Assembly (NCBI GenBank): GCA_002269645.1
Contig: NIVC01001089.1
Span: 372,001 to 436,000, forward strand
Reading direction: 5' to 3'
From: Macrostomum lignano
Lineage: Eukaryota
Length of the DNA: 64,000 nucleotides
Shown here piece after piece: positions 1,468-23,283 of this stretch. Positions within the stretch are counted from its first letter, which is position 1. The number at the start of each line of letters is the position of its first letter. Below the pieces are notes generated by a model. The model searched no databases. It was given only the letters and a program-made list of their open reading frames with translations, and was not told the DNA's origin. The translations under genes were made by a program, and so were the position numbers.

Positions 1468-4258
1468 GAGCAGCGCACAGAGCCAGTCTGAATGTTCTAG
1501 TTGAGCATCTGTGCAGCAATACGTTAAAAGTGCAGGCCAGTGTAAAATATCGGCATTACACTCTACCTGTAACGAATGTCACCTGCCAGATTGTTGGCAG
1601 TTCCGAGGTAGGAGAGGATCAACTACAACTATCAAATAGTCTATTCAGTGTTTTCTAATCAGAACTTCACGAGCGACTAAAACAAACTTAGCAGGACCTG
1701 ACGATGCAACGAACAAGCCGGGACACCTGGAGTGCTCTCACTACCTGGTCTGACCTCGGGTCTCAGCCAAATCTCTTGGTGCGATGCATGGCTCTGCAGT
1801 TGTACTTTGGCGAGCTGGTCTTTAAAACAACAGCTGAGGCCAGTGTAACTGCTGAAAGATGCTTTTGTGAGCTGCCTTCGTCTAAAAAATGTCACTCAAA
1901 AATGTCACAAAGCACTGAGTATTCGGATTTTTAATTCCTTAATGTTTGCCCCCCCCTCAGGCGCGAACAAAAAGAAGCTGATTCATTACGCAATGACAGC
2001 TGCTGCAGCGCAACTCTTTATCATTGTCTGCGTTGCCGTGATCACCTGGAAACTCGCCTCTGTAAGTTCATGGTATCTATCTATCTATCTATCTATCTAT
2101 CTATCTATCTATCTATCTATCTATCTATCTATCTATCTATCTATCTATCTATCTATCTATCTATCTATCTATCTATCTATCTATCTATCTATCTATCTAT
2201 CTATCTATCTATCTATCTATCTATCTATCTATCTATCTATCTATCTATCTATCTATCTATCTATCTATCTATCTATCTATCTATCTATCTATCTATCTAT
2301 CTATCTATCTATCTATCTATCTATCTATCTATCTATCTATCTATCTATCTATCTATCTATCTATCTATCTATCTATCTATCTATCTATCTATCTATCTAT
2401 CTATCTATCTATCTATCTATCTATCTATCTATCTATCTATCTATCTATCTATCTATCTATCTATCTATCTATCTATCTATCTATCTATCTATCTATCTAT
2501 CTATCTATCTATCTATCTATCTATCTATCTATCTATCTATCTATCTATCTATCTATCTATCTATCTATCTATCTATCTATCTATCTATCTATCTATCTAT
2601 CTATCTATCTATCTATCTATCTATCTATCTATCTATCTATCTATCTATCTATCTATCTATCTATCTATCTATCTATCTATCTATTATCTATCTATCTATC
2701 TATCTATCTATCTATCTATCTATCTATCTATCTATCTATCTATCTATCTATCTATCTATCTATCTATCTATCTATCTATCTATCTATCTATCTATCTATC
2801 TATCTATCTATCTATCTATCTATCTATCTATCTATCTATCTATCTATCTATCTATCTATCTATCTATCTATCCATCTATCTATCTATCTATCTATCTACC
2901 TATCTATCTATCTATCTATCTATCTATCTATCTATCTATCTATCTATCTATCTATCTATCTATCTATCTATCTATCTATCTATCTATCTATCTATCTATC
3001 TATCTATCTATCTATCTATCTATCTACCTATCTATCTATCTATCTATCTATCTATCTATCTATCTATCTATCTATCTATCTATCTATCTATCTACCTATC
3101 TATCTATCTATCTATCTATCTATCTATCTATCTATCTATCTATCTATCTATCTATCTATCTATCTATCTATCTATCTATCTATCTATCTATCTATCTATC
3201 TATCTATCTATCTATCTATCTATCTATCTATCTATCTATCTATCTATCTATCTATCTATCTATCTATCTATCTATCTATCTATCTATCTATCTATCTATC
3301 TATCTATCTATCTATCTATCTATCTATCTATCTATCTATCTATCTATCTATCTATCTATCTATCTATCTATCTATCTATCTATCTATCTATCTATCTATC
3401 TATCTATCTATCTATCTATCTATCTATCTATCTATCTATCTATCTATCTATCTATCTACCTATCTATCTATCTATCTATCTATCTATCTATCTATCTATC
3501 TATCTATCTATCTATCTATCTATCTATCTATCTATCTATCTATCTATCTATCTATCTATCTATCTATCTATCTATCTATCTATCTATCTATCTATCTATC
3601 TATCTATCTATCTATCTATCTATCTATCTATCTATCTATCTATCTATCTATCTATCTATCTATCTATCTATCTATCTATCTATCTATCTATCTATCTATC
3701 TATCTATCTATCTATCTATCTATCTATCTATCTATCTATCTATCTATCTATCTATCTATCTATCTATCTATCTATCTATCTATCTATCTATCTATCTATC
3801 TATCTATCTATCTATCTATCTATCTATCTATCTATCTATCTATCTATCTATCTATCTATCTATCTATCTATCTATCTATCTAAATAGCGCCTTATGTTGA
3901 CTTCAAGCGCTTATAGCAACTCGCTGTCCAAAATCCCCAGTCCCGAATTCGGAGACCGACAGCTCGGGATCAAACAGCTCGAACTGGTAGATTCGCAGGT
4001 CAGCCGGCAGTTCCTCTGCAACCACTGGCCGCGAAAAAAGACGCTGCAGCCGCCAACACCGCTGCCACCTGCGATTCCGAGCCCTACGATGTCCCGACCA
4101 GCGACCGCGGCACTGCCAACGACTCCGCGTGGGTGTACGAGCGAGCGTCCGGTGGCAGCGCCTGCAGCTCGAGCCAGGCCGCACCGCCTCTGCCACCGTC
4201 GCGTTATGGCGACGAGGATGGCGGCTACATCAACTGGAAGAAGCTGCGACAGTCTTAA
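1468..4258 (+). CDS. Receptor A (3' part): Ig-like domain, TM helix and Tyr/Pro-motif cytoplasmic tail; paralogue of the gene at 17985-23283
   Basis: Exons 1468-1608 (AAHRASLNV...LPVTNVTCQIVGSSE|gt), 1692-~1865 (QDLTMQRTSRDTWS...RCMALQLYFGELVF), 1961-2061 (TM AAAAQLFIIVCVAVITWKLAS|gtaagt) and 3917-4258 (...EPYDVP...PPLPPSRYGDEDGGYINWKKLRQS*). Each aligns by eye with exons 10-12 of gene B. The junction near 1845-1960 is ambiguous (intron or frameshift). Confidence 0.8.
2074..3881. repeat. (TATC)n / GATA microsatellite of about 1.8 kb, nearly pure, filling the TM-to-tail intron of receptor A
   Basis: Starts 12 nt after the donor gtaagt at 2062 and ends about 35 nt before the acceptor at 3916. 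Confidence 0.99.
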
Positions 4259-20900: not shown

Positions 20901-23283
20901 CAGTTATAGGCTGTCGACATAGCCACCAAAGAGGTGATTTAAGGCCTTATACTATACTCGTACTTTCACAGTACAAGGATGTAGGTATCAATGCAATCAC
21001 CTGTGACTAGACCTGAGAAGTCCAAACTGATTGATTGGTAATGAGTACTGTTCATCGCACCAAGCCAAAAGTCAGTATTTCATAAACCCACATTAACTTT
21101 AGTTACCGTGGCTCAAGAGAGAAGAGAGAAGGGAGACGCAGGAGAGAAAAGAGCTGAGAAAAGACAAACTTCGAGCGGGTGGGATTGCTATTGTGAAGTT
21201 CCTCCCAACGGCCGGATAGAGAGGCTCCGCGGGCCGGAGAAAAAGACAAAGATCAATCAGAAGGGCTAGAGCATACGTATTTTTTACATTAATTTGTTGC
21301 TTAACTGTTGCTTAGTAAACTTTCCACGAATTATTTTTAGCGCCAGAAGACAAAGCCGCTGTTGATTTGTCAGCCAAGCAGCTCACCGATAAGCACGTCT
21401 CAGTGCACGCAATTTTGAGCAACAGAAACGACCGACTACCGATTGACAACCTGACGTGCGAGTTGTTGATTTTCACTAAGCTGAAATCTGCTCCGATGAG
21501 GGTAAGAAGTATTCTCTATAAGAAATTGTTGATCTAGAATGGAGAAAGCATTAAGTTTAACGGATTGTCCTAGAATTACCTAAAAGGTTTAGTAGGCAGT
21601 AGAAGATAGTAGGCATGTAGGGTTAGAGAGTTGCTTGTAACATTACAGTTGGTTTATTTTATAGTTCTGAATTTCACCTTTTCTGTGATCTGATCTGCGG
21701 CTCTCTGTATGCATTTAGAGACGTGATAAAGGTGACCAGGCGCATCACCTGACATTGCGTAATATAATTTTTCAGCAATATATTCCAATGCATCACGACG
21801 ACCAAAACATCTGGAGCTCAGTTGTTGCTGTGCCAATCATTTCTCAGGCAACCAGAATCGCAATTCACTGCTTGGCATTGCAAATTTACTTTGGCGAGAC
21901 AGTATTTCAGTCAGTGTCTCAGGCTGATGTGGCTTTATTGCAAACTAATATTCCAAAAACCGACGCAAATGTACTTCAAGCATTTGCTCAGACAGAAGTT
22001 CCGATACAGTCGAAGTGGAACCCAGATACTGACAAGTCAAACTCGATGCTGCTAATAGTGATCGCTGCGGCTGTTCAGTTGGTCATTCTGGTTTTTGTTG
22101 TCTTGGCAACATGGCGAATTGCGAAAGTAAGTTTAACAAAATTGTATTTTGAAAGATTTAGGCAGCATATGAATGAATGAATACAAATCTGTGTTTCAAA
22201 GCATGCACATTTTGATGGCCAATTGCCAGATCACATGCACAAAATGATTTGGGAAACTTTCGGCTTGACGAAATCGAAAGATGTTCAAAGTAACGAGTAT
22301 AATAATTGATACACCTGCCTTAATGGCAGATGTGCAACCGACAGCTCAGCCGCAGCTATTGCGCAGCGCATCTGAAGGCTGCGTACGGCTGTTCAGTCCA
22401 AGGACTGGGGGGTCGCCACACACAGCCTCAATTACCCCAGCTAATGCTGGCACCAATTTTACAGCTGGGTGAACTGAAGCAATGCAGAGATCGTTAAATG
22501 TCTTGCTCAAAGACACAAATTGTTTCAGTGGGATCAGGAATCGAACCCCCGACCCGCCAGTCGTGAGTCAGACGCTCTAACCACTAGGCTACGACCTAGT
22601 ATAGTGTAGCTACAAAGTATATCTAGATAAACAATATGGGACGGGTCTCCCACAGACAGATTTGAAGTCACTACCATAACTGCCGGTACGCAGTGGCCCT
22701 GACGTAGTTTGAAAATAACGATTCACACCAATGAGAGCCAATTCCTCCTAAAGTACAGAGTATTTAGGCCTGACGATTATAGAAAGTCAAAGGGCCGCTG
22801 TCGTGTTAAGCGTGTGTATGAGTAGTGCAGAAGTCTGCATCATCGCCTCAGTGCAGCTGGTTGTGAGACGATGCCACTGAAAGCGTTGTTGTTCTCCTCC
22901 AATTGTTATTGCGATTGGCCAATTAGCTAATAAAAACAAACTTGCAGATTCGAAATCGACGTCGAGCTGTCGCGGAAGACAAAATCAGCAGACGATCCAA
23001 CGGCGGCAGCGATGCAGTTGAGCTGACCGTCACCAACAGTGCAGAGTCTGGGGGTGCGACGGCAACAGCTGCGCCGTACGACTATCCCAGCAGCGATTGG
23101 AGCACCTTCGAGCAGCAGGATTCTGCAGGAACTGCGGGGCCAAACTATGAGCAAGTGTCTATAGACTCCGGTGCCAACAACAGACCGCCACGGCAGAATC
23201 TGCCGCTACCGCCGCCGCCGCCGCCTGAGCAGCAGCAGCAATCTGACGAGTCTCCCTACATAAACTGGCAAGGGAGAGGATAA
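17985..23283 (+). CDS. Receptor B: signal peptide, N-terminal beta domain (possibly discoidin-like), about four divergent Ig-like domains, TM helix and Tyr/Pro-motif tail
   Basis: 12 phase-consistent exons: 17985-18069 (MRSLVWHLILILLFGSRVSG), 18142-18330, 18551-18787, 18852-19072, 19156-19300 (KGDHGKLLQC, C2-set-like), 19372-19529, 20203-20374, 20452-20621, 20725-20875, 21341-21501, 21776-22126 (TM IVIAAAVQLVILVFVVLATW) and 22948-23283 (PYDYP...NYEQV...PLPPPPP...PYINWQGRG*). Confidence 0.82.
18385..18530. repeat. 39-bp tandem repeat, about 3.5 copies, in intron 2 of receptor B
   Basis: CTCTGAGACAGTGTGAGACCAGCTAGCATCTAATTAGCA repeated. Confidence 0.9.
19570..20072. repeat. 45-bp minisatellite, about 11 copies, in an intron of receptor B
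   Basis: Unit GGTATCATCTCCTGCGGTAGGGGTAGTCCCACCTGGTTGGACACA, contiguous with no spacers. Confidence 0.96.
22323..22596 (-). mobile_element. tRNA-derived SINE (CORE-like), full length
   Basis: Reverse strand has A box TAGCCTAGTGGTTAG, B box GGTTCGATTCC and body TGTCTTTGAGCAAGACATTTAAC...CCCAGCTGTAAAAT; near-identical copies at 29992 and 34941. Confidence 0.88.

Follow-up and report, generated by a model that had tools for sequence, protein, structure and literature searches.

Signalling by NTRs, the non-catalytic tyrosine-phosphorylated receptors, is defined by the phosphorylation of cytoplasmic tail tyrosines by Src-family kinases (PMC11399299). In nephrin, YDxV sites phosphorylated by Fyn bind Nck and Crk (PMC12203975), while Neph1/KIRREL1, according to a title cited in PMC8294545, is tyrosine-phosphorylated by a Src-family kinase and binds Grb2. 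The ligand consensus of the SH2 domains involved is pYxNx for Grb2 and pYxx(P/L) for CrkII (PMC10279719), and orthologues of Grb2 and Nck have been catalogued in flatworms (PMC5026347). Here we analyse a 64-kb stretch of the genome of the flatworm Macrostomum lignano (contig NIVC01001089.1 of assembly GCA_002269645.1, positions 372001-436000; hereafter, at its full length, the window), and in particular two of its genes, A and B, which encode receptors with immunoglobulin (Ig)-like ectodomains. Within the otherwise fast-diverging cytoplasmic tails of this receptor family, two tyrosine motifs are kept far above composition expectation: P-Y-[DE]-x-P in the middle of the tail and Y-[IV]-N-x at 4-9 residues from the C-terminus. 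In the best reading, which we hold to be somewhat better than an even call, the tails of A and B would be phosphotyrosine docking tails of NTRs.

An earlier note on this DNA had proposed that the two tails share one ordered code, namely YDxP, YE, a proline run and a terminal YINW, separated by spacers that cannot be aligned. Both tails (3917-4258 and 22948-23283, plus strand) translate as claimed and the motifs were confirmed, these being EPYDVP, WVYER, APPLPP and GGYINWKKLRQS in tail A, and APYDYP, PNYEQV, LPLPPPPP and SPYINWQGRG in tail B, with the last one running to the stop codon in each case. Their positions are the following:

3941-3955, plus strand: tail A, SRIRR
4082-4105, plus strand: tail A, PYDVPTSD
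4136-4147, plus strand: tail A, YERA
4184-4198, plus strand: tail A, PPLPP
4226-4237, plus strand: tail A, YINW
4256-4258, plus strand: tail A, stop codon
22948-22965, plus strand: tail B, IRNRRR
23074-23097, plus strand: tail B, PYDYPSSD
23146-23157, plus strand: tail B, YEQV
23200-23226, plus strand: tail B, LPLPPPPPP
23257-23268, plus strand: tail B, YINW
23281-23283, plus strand: tail B, stop codon

In the approximately 128,000 six-frame codons of the window, YINW occurs twice, as does the looser Y[IVL]NW, and both YINW sites lie 4-6 codons ahead of the tail stop codons. The pattern YD.P is found six times in the same translation, two of these being tails A and B. A combined detector asked for open segments that end in a stop codon and have Y[DE]x[PD] and, among their final 20 residues, YxN; tails A and B were the sole segments returned from the window. 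Local alignment of the two tails gives a score of 91, against 33.6 +/- 6.2 for shuffled sequences (z = 9.2; 0 of 2000 shuffles reach 91), and the global alignment gives z = 7.9. Counted from the exon start, the four motifs are at residues 48/43, 66/67, 82/85 and 96/104 in A/B. The description of the spacers as unalignable was overstated: beyond the motifs, A and B have in common the island PYDxP[TS]SD, a basic juxtamembrane stretch and a DSA island. To judge from these alignments, tails A and B are homologous along their length; at the DNA level, no similarity was found between the two tail exons. Acidic residues stand just ahead of the terminal tyrosine in both tails (...GDEDGGYINW at 4205-4237 in A, ...SDESPYINW at 23239-23268 in B). 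The acidic stretch of tail A recalls the acidic patch of hemITAMs (hem, single-tyrosine form; ITAM, immunoreceptor tyrosine-based activation motif); a hemITAM was ruled out for tail A, the +3 residue being W and not L or I. Likewise rejected were ITAM (YxxL/I, 6-12 residues, YxxL/I), ITIM ([SIVL]xYxx[IVL]) and ITSM (the latter two being the inhibitory and switch counterparts), which neither tail matches, and a PDZ ligand, the C-termini being different (...LRQS, ...QGRG, ...VNYL, ...ENAT).

We then compared the tails of paralogues, which came from deposited proteins as well as three additional genomic loci and were sorted into classes:

Class 1: tails A and B
Class 2: ...SAYDYPSTN...IPSVYLVL..., without YxN
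Class 3: ...DYEDPDVYSQIGSCLKSPYVNYL followed by the stop, with YEDL in one copy
Class 4: ...EYDYPTT...GAYTQVL...GRVYVNQTENAT followed by the stop
Classes 5 and 6: ...GHY[DE]xDGxxFVxY...
Class 7: ...TYYEDPDEYWEITIRVNHFE followed by the stop
Distant members: VVYAQV...TEYTEI; YYYEENP; PYDND...NYQTL; or tyrosine-free

The series YDYP...YTQV...YVNQ is present at L002:28747 and in P0015, and YEDP.VYSQI...SPYVNYL, directly followed by the stop, in P0007 and at L002:17781 and 87004; YDYP is found in the tails of P0003, P0016 and P0017, and YYEDPDEYWEI at L003:5418. Locus L002 (97 kb) contains six family genes, and three of its tails pass the combined detector. For the middle site, Y-x-Q-[VI] is the more fitting description in B and classes 3 and 4, while A has a degenerate form, YERA. 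In P0045 (BOX15_Mlig012130g1) and in tails of the P0017 type, ITIM/ITSM-like sequences (VVYAQV...TEYTEI and SVYLVL, respectively) take the place of YDxP/YxN. Such sites in distant members would fit alternative signalling flavours, with a count that is not above chance (see the last line below). Motif occurrence was evaluated in 14 family tails with 5000 composition-preserving shuffles per tail:

Y[DE]xP: observed in 6/14 tails, expected 0.38
Y[DE]x[PD]: observed in 9/14 tails, expected 0.82
YxN in the last 12 residues: observed in 5/14 tails, expected 0.25 (P~5e-6)
Yxx[VIL]: observed in 8/14 tails, expected 6.3
PxxP: observed in 5/14 tails, expected 3.3
ITIM: observed in 2/14 tails (P0017 SVYLVL, P0045 VVYAQV), expected 1.9

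Only Y[DE]xP, Y[DE]x[PD] and the terminal YxN are enriched over the shuffles. The paralogues thus keep Y[DE]xP and the terminal YxN, also in classes that are otherwise unalignable, while PxxP and Yxx[VIL] are not above expectation. Two elements of the proposed code therefore hold for the family, whereas the proline run and the YE site are common to A and B alone, so that there is no four-part code at family level. Recent duplicates weakly agree with motif retention: the tail of P0055 is 100% identical to tail A despite about 15 ectodomain substitutions, and the three substitutions in the tail of P0057 are all in the spacer. A profile built from six tails (alignment A3, E<=10) returned no match; known members were missed too, so this result carries no weight as a negative.

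Gene A corresponds to the deposited protein P0002 (PAA72488.1, BOX15_Mlig007224g1, 744 amino acids), the C-terminal part of which matches window exons 1468-1607, 1692-1866, 1961-2061 and 3941-4258 exactly, its 5′ part being located upstream of the window. The genomic locus of this protein (L001) agrees with the window base for base where the two overlap.

1468-1607, plus strand: gene A exon, first half of the membrane-proximal Ig-like domain, phase 1 in and 0 out; its translation is residues ...AAHRASLNV...CQIVGSSE of P0002
1692-1866, plus strand: gene A exon, second half of the last Ig-like domain, phase 0 in and 1 out, donor T/gtgagc
1961-2061, plus strand: gene A transmembrane exon, membrane-spanning segment at about 1987-2049, donor TCT/gtaagt, phase 0
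2074-3882, unstranded: (TATC)~452 microsatellite found with Tandem Repeats Finder, making up most of the last intron of gene A (2062-3940)
3941-4258, plus strand: gene A terminal exon, i.e. tail A, 105 amino acids and stop, matching the C-terminus of P0002 and of its duplicate P0055

The sequence of P0002 (...AEASVTAERCFC/ANKKK...) is reproduced solely by the gene A model that uses the donor at 1866. Since P0002 ends with exactly these exons, the frame and the splicing of tail A are those of the deposited annotation, and the last-exon frame is confirmed by PAA72488.1. With respect to the start of the tail, placed by the earlier note at 3917, the frame stands, acceptors 3917 and 3941 being in the same one; the annotated acceptor is however 3941, so that the first eight codons are intronic in P0002.

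Gene B lies wholly inside the window. Its 12 exons form an open reading frame (ORF) of 778 amino acids with GT-AG borders, consistent phases and no internal stop. The model was assembled from the genome, two exons and one acceptor being set with the help of P0002 and of the partial models P0001/P0025 (~95% identical), which corroborate the exon set.

17985-18069, plus strand: exon 1, ATG and signal peptide MRSLVWHLILILLFGSRVSG, phase-1 donor
18142-18330 and 18551-18787, plus strand: exons 2 and 3, conserved N-terminal module, protein identity to gene A 95% and 75%, respectively
18395-18530: 39-bp minisatellite in intron 2
18891-19072, 19156-19300 and 19372-19529, plus strand: exons 4-6, within the stretch that runs from Ig-like domain 1 into domain 4 (first half)
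20203-20374, 20452-20621, 20725-20875 and 21341-21501, plus strand: exons 7-10, the same stretch, to 21501
21776-22126, plus strand: exon 11, second half of Ig-like domain 4, stalk and membrane-spanning segment (22046-22114), donor AAA/gtaagt, phase 0
22948-23283, plus strand: exon 12, i.e. tail B, 111 amino acids and stop, the sole open frame across the exon

Exons 4-10 (18891-21501) encode the first three Ig-like domains as well as the first half of the fourth, two exons making up each Ig-like domain, one of phase 1->0 and then one of phase 0->1. The last-exon frame of tail B is supported by the phase-0 donor/acceptor pair and by its being the only frame open across the exon. The C-terminus of tail B is a prediction, backed by this splice logic and by the homology to tail A; a homology search with the transmembrane exon plus tail (228 amino acids) gave no match at E<=0.01, the resemblance to tail A being too faint for a database of that size.

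Overall, the receptors consist of a signal peptide, an N-terminal module, four Ig-like domains, one transmembrane segment and a disordered tail of ~105 amino acids. An AlphaFold run on gene A (P0002) with the family alignment predicts beta-sandwiches at residues 184-600, with a predicted local distance difference test score (pLDDT) of 70-95, and a transmembrane helix at 606-638, whereas the tail (638-744) has a pLDDT of ~30, i.e. is predicted to be disordered. In a Foldseek search of the PDB, the best match of this model was SYG-2 D1-D4 (E=4e-13), with further matches to the multi-Ig ectodomains of KIT, ICAM-5, contactin, nectin, SIRP-alpha and CD22. On the other hand, neither the single exons nor gene B at full length had an Ig, CUB, lectin or kinase match in Pfam, even at E<=10, and a PDB sequence search with gene B gave none either. 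The Ig assignment therefore rests on fold and not on sequence, and the idea of a kinase-less Ig receptor is borne out at that level: the protein is type I and Ig-like, with no catalytic domain found. The type I topology is borne out by the signal peptide, by the cysteines (15 in the ectodomain vs 0 in the tail) and N-glycosylation sequons (7 vs 0) and by the Arg/Lys run that follows the transmembrane segment.

The family members have the same layout, with two-exon Ig-like domains in tandem, a single transmembrane segment and the tail on one terminal exon. A near-invariant N-terminal module (...SRADVLRTWQPSGAHCRWWES...LPLELQLEDPC...) is found in exons 2-3 of gene B and in gene A. A full-length query retrieved 23 proteins, 23/23 from M. 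lignano, and an exhaustive profile search of 1.84 billion representatives yielded 36 proteins at E<=1e-3; the distant profile matches that were checked are all from M. lignano except for a fish SHPS1/SIRP-alpha (E=5.6e-4). The E values of the family matches range from 1e-190 to 1e-11, and about 35 members can be detected in total, each of them from M. lignano. On these data, the family would thus be restricted to Macrostomum. Its members are deposited only as "hypothetical protein" or "Ig-like domain-containing protein", and a literature search for the PAA72488.1-like family or its locus tag found no paper describing it. In UniProt, P0001, P0004, P0005, P0014, P0020, P0022 and P0039, which are family members or chimeric models, bear names such as VWFD-, Spatacsin_C-, protein kinase-, SRCR-, PLAT-, RHD- and ASH-domain-containing; these names look unreliable, because Pfam finds no such domains in P0005 and P0013, the two that were tested.

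A block of ~550 bp, from ~18135 (the exon-2 acceptor) to ~18690 and comprising exon 2, the whole of intron 2 and the first half of exon 3, is 93-97% DNA-identical between gene B and at least 12 paralogues, the remainder of which is 30-50% identical as protein and has no DNA similarity. Identity starts at the exon-2 acceptor, and the copy number of the 39-bp minisatellite varies. Further copies of the block are located as follows:

L001: 10153
L002: 10233, 19843, 38069, 49056, 55673 and 89309
L003: 1990 and 9188
L004: 10244 and 21991

Such high identity amid divergent exons suggests concerted evolution, by gene conversion, that would maintain a "constant" N-terminal module. The module itself (18142-18787) reached a pLDDT of 35-67 in two AlphaFold runs; profile searches (alignment A5) returned the muskelin discoidin domain (E 0.7-1.1) and Pfam F5_F8_type_C (E=0.12), weak but mutually concordant hints that it may be discoidin/F5-8C-like. 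Ectodomains and tails, in turn, do not vary in step. The L003 neighbours P0018 and P0021 have near-identical Ig regions and different tails, in P0015 vs P0026 tail class and ectodomain similarity disagree, and similar tails on different ectodomains occur. This mismatch implies exon shuffling, or else gene conversion of a patchy kind, inside the arrays.

If the tails of A and B are docking tails, engagement or clustering of the receptor would lead cytosolic tyrosine kinases to phosphorylate the tail tyrosines, upon which a Nck/Crk-type SH2 adaptor would be drawn to pY-[DE]-x-P and a Grb2/Drk-type adaptor to the terminal pY-x-N. In A and B only, additional SH2, SH3 or WW contacts could come from the proline run and from a third site, which is Y-x-Q-[VI]-like and in A degenerate; neither of them is conserved in the family. 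The SH2 assignments of the earlier note are as published (PMC10279719): YINW of A and B as well as YVNY and YVNQ of the paralogues agree with the Grb2 consensus Y-x-N, and YDVP, YDYP and YEDP with the Crk/Nck consensus Y-x-x-P with an acidic +1 residue, all as putative ligands. A preference of Nck for Asp at +1 would follow by analogy with the YDxV sites of nephrin. The choice of the Src family as the kinase class is an assumption, Src, Abl or others being alike candidates. A proline at +3 is also favoured by Abl-type kinases.

Several points weigh against this docking function. Tails A and B are 36% identical, no more than the Ig exons are (21-53%), and tail B is contained in no deposited protein. 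In the 14 tails PxxP and Yxx[VIL] are unenriched; YxN is absent from several tail classes, and the close paralogue P0009 lacks the +3 proline (YEDL). The motifs are short and were defined after the sequences had been seen. Moreover, the Ig-domain tree shows ectodomain and tail classes to be mosaically combined, for which reason independent retentions cannot be counted from it; since the tails also share ancestry, the shuffle test speaks of retention and provides no count of independent events. Finally, tyrosine phosphorylation and adaptor binding are steps that we infer.

Other explanations of the motifs have to be considered. The tyrosines could belong to phosphorylation-independent YxxPhi signals for sorting or endocytosis by adaptor protein (AP) complexes, which would set the surface level or the polarised delivery of the receptor. 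YEQV of B, YSQI of class 3 and YTQV of class 4, all of them middle sites, have this form, and membrane-distal tyrosine signals near the C-terminus are common sorting motifs, which counts in its favour. The motifs that are actually kept do not fit, however: position +3 is a proline in Y[DE]xP and is W, Y or Q in the terminal motif, where N at +2 is invariant. As Yxx[VIL] occurs in 8/14 tails vs 6.3 expected, and the middle site of tail A is YERA, we regard a sorting function as improbable. A role as ligands of non-SH2 modules (WW, SH3, EVH1 or a C-terminal scaffold), by which an adhesion molecule would be constitutively linked to the cytoskeleton, would agree with PPLPPSR (PxxPxR-like) in A and the proline run in B, and the nearest Foldseek ectodomains do include the adhesion molecules SYG-2, nectin, ICAM-5 and contactin. 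Yet conservation of the proline motifs does not extend past A and B (the equivalent in P0017, of the nearest class, is IPSVYLVLSPS), the divergent C-termini leave no PDZ-type ligand, and what is invariant is a tyrosine with an acidic residue at +1 or N at +2, that is, determinants of the SH2 type; we consider this explanation very unlikely.

A different objection is that the shared motifs have no function at all and are the residual similarity of recent paralogues, due to descent with or without gene conversion. A and B belong to one tandem array, at a distance of 19 kb, concerted evolution is strong elsewhere in the family and ectodomain/tail mosaics exist; the tail identity of A and B (36%) is similar to that of the Ig exons, and the conservation of the tyrosines between these two (3/4) is by itself not statistically compelling. 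Against this, the tail exons of A and B have no DNA similarity, unlike the gene-converted block; Y[DE]xP and the terminal YxN recur in the unalignable classes 3, 4 and 7, at 15-20x expectation, and the substitutions of recent duplicates are located in spacers. Residual similarity thus appears a rather unlikely account of the motifs, and phosphotyrosine docking remains our preferred one.

Should these tyrosines truly serve for docking, the family would be the first set of non-catalytic phosphotyrosine receptors to be described that is specific to a free-living flatworm, and short SH2-ligand motifs (Nck/Crk-type YDxP, Grb2-type YxN) would be the conserved core of fast-evolving tails. It would also offer concrete tyrosines for mutation in M. 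lignano, a model species with RNA interference and transgenesis. The motif match is probably of less general interest than the setting of the family: lineage restriction, tandem arrays, tail classes and a homogenised N-terminal block are hallmarks of recognition-receptor repertoires. A and B could be imagined as part of a Macrostomum-specific, tandemly arrayed and independently evolved mosaic repertoire of paired activating/inhibitory recognition receptors with an immune, allorecognition or mating-related role. Each such receptor would join a gene-converted N-terminal head, possibly discoidin/lectin-like, to fast-diversifying Ig-like stalks and to interchangeable tails, the latter comprising adaptor-docking YDxP/YxN and ITIM/ITSM-like classes beside tail-less lectin-like neighbours. 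Taken as a whole, this picture is a speculative one that we think unlikely to hold.

The remaining features of the window are the following:

5231-10563, plus strand: X1, annotated gene of 414 amino acids, paralogous to X2, between A and B
12769-16458, plus strand: X2, paralogous to X1, between A and B
40878-41294, minus strand: LYR-motif exon (Complex1_LYR, E=1e-4), with the open frame continuing into the (GACA)n array
46186-49323, minus strand: broken retrotransposon remnants, gag and integrase zinc-binding matches in several frames
50130-50909, plus strand: single-exon ORF of 259 amino acids, signal peptide and C-type lectin domain (Pfam Lectin_C, E=2e-9)
53184-53957, minus strand, its 5′ exon probably at 55754-56035 (minus strand): rhodopsin-family G protein-coupled receptor (7tm_1, E=4e-26)

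By eye, the exons of X1/X2 show Ig F-strand motifs and C-type-lectin-like halves, in which Pfam finds nothing; their last exons encode a hydrophobic, transmembrane-like stretch followed almost directly by the stop, leaving little or no tail. The UniProt models P0005 and P0013 are chimeras that fuse the X1/X2 type to the Ig type, and the alternation of the two gene types therefore recurs at other loci. A look-up of the C-type lectin ORF found no exact protein record. The G protein-coupled receptor has NRY in place of DRY and by eye resembles melatonin receptors. An Rfam scan of the window found no RNA family. Very long microsatellites are present, namely, besides the (TATC)~452 array at 2074-3882, (CAGA)~610 at 6364-8805 in an X1 intron and (GACA)~320 at 39758-41033; about 20 other arrays are present, with many minisatellites of 12-48 bp, and these repeats bring about long spurious ORFs. 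Finally, there are three or four copies of a dispersed ~300-bp repeat, which is probably a small mobile element; when translated, the copies are 85-96% identical (22269-22606, in the last intron of gene B; 29963-30317, minus strand; 34885-35370).

Compared with the systems described at the outset, genes A and B resemble nephrin (NPHS1, grouped here with SYG-2 and Sticks-and-stones) in being kinase-less receptors of the Ig superfamily with tail tyrosines that have Asp at +1. They differ in the motif, which is Y[DE]xP (YDVP, YDYP, with P and not V at +3) instead of YDxV, and in the ectodomain, nephrin having eight C2-type Ig domains and one FN3 domain vs four beta-sandwich domains and no FN3 in the family. 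The exhaustive family profile search found no nephrin homologue, and Pfam no Ig or FN3 match; the reported M. lignano orthologue of nephrin is PAA62947.1, whereas gene A is PAA72488.1. With four Ig-like domains, no FN3, no sequence relationship and YDxP rather than YDxV, the two receptors fall outside the nephrin family and, on their predicted proteins, are not nephrin orthologues. The earlier comparison ("as nephrin does") can hence serve only as a functional analogy and fails as orthology. Neph1/KIRREL1 is likewise an adhesion receptor of the Ig superfamily, and its binding of Grb2 parallels the role proposed for the terminal YxN; its reported M. lignano orthologue is however PAA55645.1, and the profile search found no sequence relationship.

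In the guidance receptor Dscam, which acts with Dock (Nck), a tail of the Ig superfamily combines YxxP and PxxP, through which a single adaptor is bound by both its SH2 and its SH3 domains. This comparison is no more than a lead; Dscam is a much larger Ig/FN3 protein to which no homology was detected. CD28 similarly joins a YxN site to proline motifs. At the level of fold, SYG-2 is the top Foldseek match of the gene A model, and at the level of sequence, a fish SIRP-alpha/SHPS-1 is the sole non-Macrostomum protein reached by the family profile. With NTRs such as CD28 and SIRP-alpha/SHPS-1, the A/B family has in common a single-pass, type I layout with an Ig-like ectodomain, no intrinsic catalytic domain, and a short unstructured tail in which conserved tyrosine motifs are the sole recognisable feature. 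It differs from the known NTRs in that the searches revealed no family relationship by sequence, in that A and B are without ITAM or ITIM, and in the ectodomain, which has an extra N-terminal module besides four Ig-like domains. The design of A and B is thus an ordinary one, carried by a family that is uncharacterised, lineage-specific and unusual.

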